DNA of 64,000 bases from Tetramitus jugosus (Eukaryota > Protista > Heterolobosea): positions 186,001 through 250,000 of the forward strand of contig OW569357.1 of NCBI GenBank assembly GCA_937625935.1, in the 5' to 3' direction. Below, in pieces: positions 31,110-43,621 of this stretch. The notes below the pieces were generated by a model. That model saw only the letters and a list, made by a program, of their open reading frames with translations, was not told the DNA's origin and did no database searches. The position numbers were made by a program, and so were the translations under genes. Position 1 is the stretch's first letter; each line of letters starts with the position of its first letter.

Positions 31110-31297
31110 AAGCTCAAACAAAGATAGGTCTTCATATTCACATGTGTCTTTATGAAAAATATGCTCTCTTCCTCTCTCAGCGGCGGGCAACGGAGCAGCC
31201 TCTAATTCACTTCATGTACACGGCATTTTCTCGAGGAAGCTCGAATGAAGCAATCATAACAATTTCATTTCCAGATTTTAGAAATGACAACATCCAC

Positions 31298-32296
31298 TTA
31301 CCGCATTGTTATCATTGACGATGATGACGGAATTCGGTTCATCATATTAATTACAGAATCATTGTCTCTTTCTTGACGCGTCATTTGATCCAACAGACGA
31401 TTGTTATTGTAACTAGTATTGTTGTGATTCGTGTTGTCATGATCATCATTGTGTGAACGAACAATCACAGGATACTGTTGCTGTTGTTGTTGTGTTTGAA
31501 TCGATCGACCAGTAATAAACACCAGAATAGCACTCTTGACCAACATGAACTCTGTGCGTGAAAACAATTGTGTCATCCATGGCAGAAAACTCAGTGGAGA
31601 TTTCTTGACGGTTCTCAGTTCAGAGCTCACTGCAAATGCACCGACATAGGCCGGTTCATTCTCCTTCAACAAGAGTGATGTCTGAACGGTAAAGTGTTTC
31701 TTGAGACGCATGGATCTCCATTTACTACTACCACTGTCTAGCATGCTGTTGGACAAGTCATTGAACATGGAATCATTGTCAATCATTGTCATTGCATTAT
31801 CATCATTGTATTCATCATCATCATATCCGTCATTATCATAGTACTCTTGATTGTTGTTGTTGTTGTTGTTGCATGGATTGGGAATGATGGATAGTGAAGA
31901 ATTGTTGAGTGATTGTTGTTGTTGTTCATGATCAATCTTCTGGTGGTATTGTTGTTCTTGTTGTTGTTGTTGTTCTTGTGACTGTTGATGTTGTTGTTGT
32001 TGTTGTTGTTGTTGTTGGTGATATTGTTGTGAGTAGAGCTCCAGTAGAGTCAATGGTGGTGGTTGTTGTTGTAGTTGGGGAATGACATGGAGAGTTGGCA
32101 TGGATCCATGATTGGTTATTGTTGTTGTTGTTGTATCATTCGATTGCTGCTGATTGTTGTTCTTGTCAGGTGGTGCATGTGGTACAACAGGCGAAGAAGA
32201 GGTTGATTTTGATGAGGAAAAGAGTCGTGAGAGCAACCTTGTGATGAATCGAATGATTTGCATCACACTGTGATCAATGCGCAAGAGCAGCCGCAT
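31298..32296 (-). CDS. Low-complexity protein carrying a secretin (GspD-type) C-terminal segment; candidate mitochondrial T2SS-related protein
   Basis: 31690-31499 encodes TVQTSLLLKENEPAYVGAF-x11-SPLSFLPWMTQLF..KSAILVFITGRSI, collinear with the secretin signature. The R/L/S-rich N-terminus resembles a mitochondrial presequence. Confidence 0.6.
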   Translation of the reverse strand: MRLLLRIDHSVMQIIRFITRLLSRLFSSSKSTSSSPVVPHAPPDKNNNQQQSNDTTTTTITNHGSMPTLHVIPQLQQQPPPLTLLELYSQQYHQQQQQQQQQHQQSQEQQQQQEQQYHQKIDHEQQQQSLNNSSLSIIPNPCNNNNNNNQEYYDNDGYDDDEYNDDNAMTMIDNDSMFNDLSNSMLDSGSSKWRSMRLKKHFTVQTSLLLKENEPAYVGAFAVSSELRTVKKSPLSFLPWMTQLFSRTEFMLVKSAILVFITGRSIQTQQQQQQYPVIVRSHNDDHDNTNHNNTSYNNNRLLDQMTRQERDNDSVINMMNRIPSSSSMITMR

Positions 32297-32437
32297 TTTT
32301 AAACAACAAAATAGGACACAGTTGGTATCTTACTGGCCAGTGTACGTCGTATTTTTTTGATTAAATATCTTTGAATGTTGCGGGAGGTGAAATTCTAGTT
32401 TGTTGTTTTGATTTTTGTTTCTCGAGAAGGAGAAATT

Positions 32438-33322
32438 TTAATTCAATACAACGTTATCCAGGAGACGAGTTCCAGACAACTTTATGACAGCAGATAGAAC
32501 TGAACCTCCTGGTGGTAATGGGTCCAGGCTGTTATCAAGTATTTTTCCTGAATGAGCACAACAGAGACTCACGTACTCCAATGAGTAGTTGGGATACTTG
32601 TGCTGGGAGAGGTCATTCCTCACCATATCTACCAAGTCTTTACATCTAATTTCTTTACCCATAGATTTACTTTCAACATAATAGGATTGAGCTTTAAGAA
32701 GAGCTTGGTACATCACTGGAGCGACTAGTCTATCCTCCTCTGATAGGTATCTGTTACGAGAACTCATGGCTAAACCATCTGGTTCTCTAACAGTCGGCAC
32801 AATGTGCACGATTGGATCCATGTTTAGATCATTGACCAGTTTTCGAACAACTATACATTGAATGGCATCCTTTTGACCAAAGAAAGCGTCAGTTGGCTTG
32901 ACAATGTTGAACAACTTGGTTACAACTGTGGCGACACCATTGAAGAAACCAGGTCTTTGTTTAGCTTCTGGTTGATCTTTCAAGAAGCATTCCTGGTCAA
33001 AAACAACTCTGGTGCAAAAGTCTGAGGCATACATATCTGTAGGCTCAGGAGCAAACAGGATATCCACACTCTTTGATTGTATCATCTTGTCACAATCTGA
33101 ATCAAAAGTGCGGGGATATCGGGAAAAGTCTTCATTTGGTCCAAATTGAGTCGGGTTGACAAACAGGGAAGCGATAGTGACTTCTGTTTGAGCTTTGGCC
33201 TGTCTCATTAAGGTAAGATGACCCTCGTGCAGAGCTCCCATTGTTGGAACAAATCCAACGGAGGAGTTTTTCAGGGCTGATCTCAAAACCCTAAACTCCG
33301 AAATTGACTTTACAATCTTCAT
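32438..33322 (-). CDS. panC: Pantoate--beta-alanine ligase
   Basis: GFVPTMGALHEGH, FVNPTQF, RPGFFNGVATVV, FGQKDAIQ, REPDGLAMSSRN and RLLDN. Confidence 0.97.
   Translation of the reverse strand: MKIVKSISEFRVLRSALKNSSVGFVPTMGALHEGHLTLMRQAKAQTEVTIASLFVNPTQFGPNEDFSRYPRTFDSDCDKMIQSKSVDILFAPEPTDMYASDFCTRVVFDQECFLKDQPEAKQRPGFFNGVATVVTKLFNIVKPTDAFFGQKDAIQCIVVRKLVNDLNMDPIVHIVPTVREPDGLAMSSRNRYLSEEDRLVAPVMYQALLKAQSYYVESKSMGKEIRCKDLVDMVRNDLSQHKYPNYSLEYVSLCCAHSGKILDNSLDPLPPGGSVLSAVIKLSGTRLLDNVVLN

Positions 33323-42262: not shown

Positions 42263-43621
<1,359 letters not shown>

Follow-up and report, generated by a model that had tools for sequence, protein, structure and literature searches.

The question raised by this locus is whether a short, secretin-like stretch embedded in a glutamine- and asparagine-rich open reading frame (ORF) belongs to a type II secretion system (T2SS), and what role such a protein might play in a eukaryotic cell. 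The ORF lies at positions 31298-32296 of the window, the 64,000-nucleotide stretch of DNA from the heterolobosean Tetramitus jugosus that was analysed here. It is encoded on the minus strand, as are all features of the gene given below. The frame is intact, with an ATG start and 332 codons followed by a stop codon that is included in these coordinates, and ~24% of the residues of its product are Q or N. The initial annotation had proposed that it harbours the C-terminal module of a secretin from a mitochondrial T2SS. This proposal is borne out, in that the ORF is an orthologue of published mitochondrial GspD. We estimate a probability of about 0.86 that it is the amoeba's single nuclear gene for this protein, a truncated secretin of the mitochondrial T2SS (miT2SS) and a probable subunit of an outer-membrane pore, with location, oligomerization and pore function attributed to it by orthology.

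A secretin C-terminus in a low-complexity protein

Positions 31690-31499 encode residues T203-I266, which is exactly the peptide quoted in the initial annotation. When this segment was excised and compared with Pfam, it matched the Secretin family (PF00263) with an E-value of 0.003 and a score of 17.6 bits, below the gathering score of 27.5. The match extends over profile positions 104-166 of 169, covering 63 positions; residues 203-266 thus represent the last third of the family profile, in keeping with the earlier remark that only the last part of the secretin domain is recognizable. The same segment also matches the PilQ model TIGR02515 at positions 363-425 of 428. For the full-length ORF no Secretin match was returned by Pfam, the match being seen with the excised segment only, nor was a periplasmic N domain (Secretin_N, PF03958) found in the ORF. 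Matches of the full ORF to TFIIA, DnaX and TolA in Pfam and NCBIfam are low-complexity noise. When the whole ORF was compared with the PDB, the best matches other than noise were to the C-termini of PilQ proteins, for example residues 650-716 of 6ve2 (E=0.34).

Taken alone, the single-sequence match to secretins is weak and not significant genome-wide, since it scored 14.5 bits, with an E-value of 0.3, when all 26.35 Mb of the genome were scanned in six frames. It is the family-level evidence that raises the match well above chance. When the modules of 14 orthologues were scanned singly against Pfam, nine matched Secretin, with a best E-value of 8.7e-7, and no other family recurred. A profile built from the 14 sequences and compared with all PDB chains gave five matches, every one of them a secretin: the PilQ structures 9x0w (1.3e-3) and 6ve2 (1.4e-3), 3jc8, 6w6m, and GspD 5wq7. 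Each of these matches sits at the extreme C-terminus of the secretin domain. The family profile therefore matches secretins, and only secretins in the PDB. On these sequence comparisons, the ORF is a remote secretin homologue and not a Pfam-level member of PF00263.

The conserved mini-secretin module spans residues 191-264 (positions 31505-31726), and can be written SKW..MRLKKHF..YVGAF..SPLSFLP..LF..FMLVKSAILVFITGR. It is supported by the Pfam and PDB profile matches and by columns that are invariant in the family. Collinear HMMER alignments to PilQ C-termini, together with an AlphaFold2 (AF2) model, indicate that the C-terminal secretin signature is present, comprising a GET-type turn, an amphipathic helical loop (AHL) and a terminal hydrophobic strand. 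The AHL equivalent, residues 233-247 (SPLSFLPWMTQLFSR; positions 31556-31600), lies between two predicted membrane strands and aligns with the VP.LG.LP.LG.LF motif of PilQ. The segment between the prolines had been described as one residue short, and the HMMER alignment indeed places a one-residue gap there relative to PilQ.

In comparison with bacterial secretins (GspD/PulD and PilQ; PF00263; PDB 5wq7, 6ve2 and 9x0w), the ORF retains the last strand, the helical loop and the strand that follows it. The common elements are a GET-like turn, an amphipathic helical loop of the form P-x-L-x-x-x-P...LF, and a terminal hydrophobic strand ending in F-I-T. In contrast to its bacterial counterparts, the gene is nuclear and eukaryotic, and approximately two thirds of the secretin domain is missing, as judged by unmatched profile positions. 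Signature glycines have also been replaced, GG by AF, and LG..IP.LG by LSFLPWMT.

Outside the module, two further conserved pieces can be distinguished. The N-terminus had been described as amphipathic and rich in R, L and S, and AF2 predicts an amphipathic helix here at residues 2-27 (RLLLRIDHSVMQIIRFITRLLSRLFS; positions 32216-32293) with pLDDT values of 79-92. A comparable hydrophobic or basic N-terminus is found in all full-length family members, and this helix is a probable targeting or anchoring segment. It is followed by a low-complexity linker, residues 28-186 (positions 31739-32215), which is composed of S/T, poly-Q, poly-N and D-rich stretches and has a pLDDT below 50. Within the linker is a second conserved family motif, LTLLELYSQQY, at residues 82-92 (positions 32021-32053). 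A regular expression search found an equivalent ahead of the module in 11 of the 14 family members, namely this ORF and 10 others, where the counterparts include VTSLDMLANQF, ISALNMAANAF and FSELNILSEKF. Beyond the module is a Q/N/D-rich C-terminal tail, residues 266-332 (positions 31301-31501; pLDDT below 50), which falls outside the secretin homology and can be aligned, in part, solely to the closest relative (P0002). Everything outside helix 2-27, motif 82-92 and module 191-264 is predicted to be disordered.

An AF2 model of residues 182-275, built with the family alignment, has a mean pLDDT of 71.7 and contains a strand at 216-230, a short helix at 234-237 and a second strand at 249-263. 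This hairpin with an amphipathic helical loop is the arrangement that has been described for GoGspD (PMC8134430). Residues V162 and F166 of GoGspD, which were highlighted in that work, map to M241 and F245 of the ORF, such that both positions are hydrophobic, and the position equivalent to F245 is F or W in all 14 family members. In the model of the full-length protein, the mean pLDDT is 46.9 and the N-terminal helix alone is confident. Fold searches proved uninformative because the lone hairpin is too small: a Foldseek search of the PDB with the 94-residue domain model returned beta-hairpin pore toxins and similar proteins (best E=0.41) and no secretin, while a wide VIA-align search with the monomer model returned levivirus coat proteins (best Z=3.2), again with no secretin.

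Orthologues and partner genes

The mitochondrial GspD of the miT2SS was described by Horvathova et al. (2021, Nat Commun 12:2947; PMC8134430). Examples used for comparison here are N. gruberi XP_002679919.1, N. fowleri KAF0973463.1, A. godoyi KAF0852335.1 and Pharyngomonas GECH01012900.1. In BLASTP, the ORF is 54% identical to the Naegleria fowleri protein (E=5e-30), which answers the suggestion that it be compared with Naegleria GspD, and 41% identical over 97 amino acids to that of Andalucia godoyi (E=3e-27). When 5.8 billion proteins were searched with residues 190-285, six relatives were identified. One of these, P0005 (75% identity), is GECH01012900.1 of Pharyngomonas kirbyi, a sequence entered under 'Core Gsp subunits / GspD' in Supplementary Data 1 of PMC8134430. 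The closest GspD relatives are metagenomic, with 82-84% identity.

In an exhaustive HMMER search, a five-sequence profile matched just 25 of 1.84 billion representative proteins at E<=1e-3. Four of these, P0008 (Malawimonas), P0009 (Gefionella), P0012 (N. fowleri) and P0013 (Andalucia), are GspD entries of the PMC8134430 table, and the Percolomonas sequence of that table is also among the 25, as is P0025, a C-terminal fragment of a bacterial-type secretin (E=3e-4). The module is thus conserved across heteroloboseans, jakobids and malawimonads. When the GspD family profile was run against the genome from which the window derives, it found exactly one copy, this ORF (E=2.1e-47), and neither a second GspD nor GspDL was reached. 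From the BLASTP matches, the table entry for GECH01012900.1 and the one-copy profile scan, it follows that the ORF is the single-copy orthologue of published mitochondrial GspD. Together with an N-terminus that aligns with those of its homologues, this identifies positions 31298-32296 as a complete single-exon coding sequence for a mitochondrial-type GspD. The exact sequences of the ORF and its neighbours are absent from a collection of 15 billion proteins; the predicted proteome of this genome is evidently not part of that collection.

The ORF shares with mitochondrial GspD an N-terminal hydrophobic or amphipathic helix, a motif resembling V-T-x-L-D/E-x-x-A-N-x-F, and a C-terminal secretin module of ~75 residues. 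The module is 41-75% identical to those of mitochondrial GspD proteins, and the partner genes found in the genome (GspE, GspF, GspG, GspDL and GspDN1) are also the same. The host, however, is a heterolobosean that is absent from the species of PMC8134430. Moreover, the ORF encodes 332 residues, compared with 158-270 in mitochondrial GspD, owing to a poly-Q/N/D linker of ~160 residues and a Q/N-rich tail of 67 residues, both of which are absent from most orthologues, and its second motif (LTLLELYSQQY) is slightly degenerate.

Database records of Acrasis kona and Willaertia magna hold homologues of GspD or GspDL that are unnamed or misnamed. An example is P0006 (Acrasis kona KAL0489463.1, 220 aa), which is recorded as 'mannose-1-phosphate guanyltransferase beta'. 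Its residues 1-145 are clearly GspD, with the N-terminal helix, a VTSLDMLANQH motif and the module as far as SPLS, beyond which the sequence is unrelated. This record is likely to represent a mis-modelled gene, with a missed intron or a frameshift, to which a name has been wrongly transferred.

A search for other Gsp genes had been proposed in the initial annotation, and GspE, GspF, GspG, GspDL and GspDN1 are all found in the same genome. Of the grounds for refutation given there, a lack of other Gsp genes and a lack of a profile match to secretins therefore both fall away. GspE (T2SSE, 71.3 bits) is on contig C11; GspF, with two T2SSF domains in one frame of 486 amino acids, is on contig C5; and GspG is on contig C6, where the match scores 24.2 bits, above the cut-off, and the ORF has a pseudopilin-type N-terminus (NMIEILIAISIIVTFSG). 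These other core Gsp genes are intact open frames. The GspE match (L002, G000:C11:236944-240639) falls within a 271-aa ORF at 1393-2208 on the minus strand of that locus; directly upstream, on the same strand and 6 nt away, is a 168-aa ORF at 2215-2721. This pair may be one GspE gene split by a stop codon or a tiny intron, or the N-terminal region of GspE may be encoded as a separate ORF. A weaker T2SSE match on contig C20 (28.4 bits; L003, G000:C20:231357-231617, minus strand) covers profile positions 187-273 within a 277-aa frame. It is possibly GspEL, and the frame is a candidate for this catalytically degenerate GspE-like paralogue of the miT2SS.

GspDL constitutes a distinct family with a signature of its own, ANPDFGNF..KKGY.AEVWLNDGETVVLS..YRTHYSPE..LDRLFGLH.DTVK. 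A degenerate pattern for this signature located a 179-aa GspDL on contig C21 (L014:1351-1890, minus strand), which carries the block ANPDFGNF...NDGETVVLS...YRTHYSPE that is absent from the GspD ORF. Its homologues include an A. godoyi protein named GspDL and proteins of N. gruberi, N. fowleri, Willaertia and Acrasis, with identities of 73% (Willaertia), 61% (Acrasis) and 60-64% (Naegleria). The similarity between GspD and GspDL in hhalign is marginal (E=0.066, probability 0.8%). A scan of the genome with Pfam Secretin_N gave only two sub-threshold matches, both within large unrelated frames. An N-domain homologue, the 119-aa GspDN1, is encoded as a separate gene on contig C18, where it was located with a degenerate DNA pattern for the conserved C-terminal motif.

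Expression, constraint and probable role

The gene is covered by Logan contigs from four RNA libraries that belong to four separate studies; one library was prepared with oligo-dT and the other three are soil metatranscriptomes. The contig L013 (1247 nt, SRR8449811) is collinear with the genome, extends from 107 nt 5' of the ATG to ~150 nt beyond the stop codon, and encodes a full-length protein of 325 amino acids. It aligns in two blocks, 31147-31841 and 32032-32397, and the gap between them corresponds only to a skipped CAA repeat. Its extent, 31147-32397, probably reflects a monocistronic, unspliced transcript. The neighbouring HECT ligase and panC genes are covered by other contigs, and coverage is interrupted in the intergenic region on either side. 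This pattern fits RNA rather than carried-over DNA, although metatranscriptome contigs are assemblies, which do not prove transcription and to which carried-over DNA may contribute.

No credible intron joint was found in the RNA contigs across the GspD gene, which agrees with the earlier statement that no intron supplies more of the domain. Candidate joints at 31496/32111 and 32077/32109 were rejected, as they lie in CAA repeats, have sides shorter than 30 nt and lack intron ends. The CAA/CAG (poly-Q) repeats at window positions 31474-31496 and 32111-32135 draw many unrelated metatranscriptome contigs, and neither the depth spikes to ~900 nor the false joints that occur there should be taken as biology.

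The genome of the window and L013 represent two near-identical strains, in both of which the ORF is intact. They differ at 20 aligned codons. All eight non-synonymous differences lie within residues 36-187, as do all in-frame insertions and deletions with the exception of one poly-Q indel in the C-terminal tail. Within residues 1-35 and 188-332 there are eight changes, all of them synonymous, seven of which fall in residues 188-332; the mini-secretin module 191-264 has three synonymous and no non-synonymous changes, and helix 2-27 has one and none. The amino-acid changes are confined to residues 36-187; purifying selection acts on the conserved pieces, whilst the linker is free to vary. Together, the strain comparison and the environmental RNA libraries suggest that the gene is expressed and constrained.

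Several properties of GspD orthologues have been established experimentally. NgGspD enters yeast mitochondria without a requirement for membrane potential, and binds to itself and to GspDN1 in a yeast two-hybrid assay; when purified, it exhibits pore activity (PMC8134430). GoGspD forms a urea-resistant complex of ~200 kDa in liposomes (PMC8134430). Outer-membrane location and pore formation are known only for the orthologues from N. gruberi and G. okellyi (PMC8134430), and by orthology the most likely role of the ORF product is that of an outer-membrane pore subunit of the mitochondrial T2SS.

The protein may be viewed as three conserved pieces, helix 2-27, motif 82-92 and module 191-264, joined by spacers of poly-Q/N/D that evolve rapidly. 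In the module, the predicted order of elements is a strand, a GET-like turn, a strand, the amphipathic helical loop and a final strand. By homology with the Naegleria and Gefionella proteins, GspD would enter the mitochondrial outer membrane without the need for a membrane potential. It would then oligomerize via the beta-hairpin and helical loop, each protomer contributing one of each to the pore. Such a pore would probably act in concert with GspDL and GspDN1-3, which are encoded separately, and would sit above an inner-membrane platform of GspF and GspE and a pseudopilus of GspG.

A more elaborate arrangement is also conceivable, in which GspD and GspDL form an obligate hetero-oligomeric channel. 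Each would contribute only the outer hairpin, and the linker and tail of GspD would act as a disordered collar with a gating or tethering function, in place of the missing inner barrel, gate and N-domain rings. A secretin pore of this kind would have no bacterial equivalent, and we consider the arrangement speculative and rather unlikely. A prediction for a 1:1 pair of the GspD module and GspDL residues 78-179, made without controls, gave no verdict (score 0.00) and is evidence neither for nor against binding. A 2023 mBio review has proposed a channel of up to five separate GspD-derived proteins (PMC10128026).

The alternatives to a pore subunit differ in how much of the homology they accept. 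The most generous would see a genuine GspD homologue that has lost the ability to form pores. The pore would then consist mainly of GspDL or of some other protein, with GspD as an accessory subunit, a modulator or a targeting factor; or else GspD would act in another compartment, for example in that part of the pathway which is linked to peroxisomes. Retention of just ~75 residues of the secretin domain would be compatible with such a role, as would the presence of the paralogue GspDL in the same genome, and the literature leaves open the composition of the pore (PMC10128026). Yet orthologues with the same truncated architecture oligomerize, enter liposomes and form pores in vitro (PMC8134430), the highlighted positions of the helical loop are kept as M241 and F245, and the module is under strict purifying selection, all of which makes a loss of pore formation improbable.

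That the gene might be a decaying relic, a once-functional GspD drifting towards a low-complexity, non-functional ORF, is brought to mind by the composition of the protein, over half of which is made up of poly-Q/N/S/D spacer with insertions and deletions between strains. Some lineages, such as Percolomonas, retain only a subset of the system (PMC8134430). Such decay is very improbable for a frame that is intact in two strains and present in RNA libraries, in which residues 1-35 and 188-332 show eight synonymous and no non-synonymous changes, and which is accompanied by other core genes that are all intact. Finally, a low-complexity eukaryotic protein could mimic the C-terminal motif of secretins by chance. 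The lone sub-threshold Pfam match and its E-value in the genome-wide scan would by themselves permit this, but the conservation of the module from heteroloboseans to jakobids and malawimonads, its repeated and exclusive matches to secretins, and its co-occurrence with GspE, GspF, GspG, GspDL and GspDN1 effectively refute it.

As a probable outer-membrane pore subunit, the protein adds a GspD from a heterolobosean outside PMC8134430 and not a new kind of component; the notion of a 'hidden' or half-secretin in need of partners, put forward in the initial annotation, was already in print. What is specific to this GspD is its length, with a low-complexity linker of ~160 residues and a tail of 67 residues that vary between strains. 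The locus provides a genome-level case of a mitochondrial T2SS-derived system, with six genes found (GspD, GspDL, GspDN1, GspE, GspF and GspG), and supports broad retention of the miT2SS in Heterolobosea. It should also be of help to annotation, since short Gsp genes embedded in low-complexity sequence escape Pfam thresholds. The current picture of the miT2SS is unchanged, a truncated and split secretin having been described before.

Host and neighbouring genes

The window is eukaryotic; the genes in the neighbourhood of GspD include those for a HECT E3 ligase, CAF1, Rad51 and a Brix-domain protein. The Gsp proteins of the genome are closest to those of heteroloboseans, and the sequencing runs that carry the locus derive from soil and groundwater samples.

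Immediately upstream of GspD is panC, encoding pantoate-beta-alanine ligase (window positions 32438-33322, minus strand). It has two close relatives, with 98% and 71% identity, whilst its best named homologues, from ochrophytes (Triparma and diatoms) and Chloroflexi, are only 45-50% identical. No panC of Naegleria or Acrasis is present among the best 120 matches.

Elsewhere in the window, a single ORF of 417 amino acids on the plus strand (positions 42368-43621) is an in-frame fusion of ubiquitin and RAD51. Ubiquitin occupies residues 1-76, ending in LRLRGG, and is followed in turn by an acidic linker, an HhH domain and a full Rad51 domain, the Pfam matches having E-values of 1.5e-122 for Rad51 and 1.5e-31 for ubiquitin.
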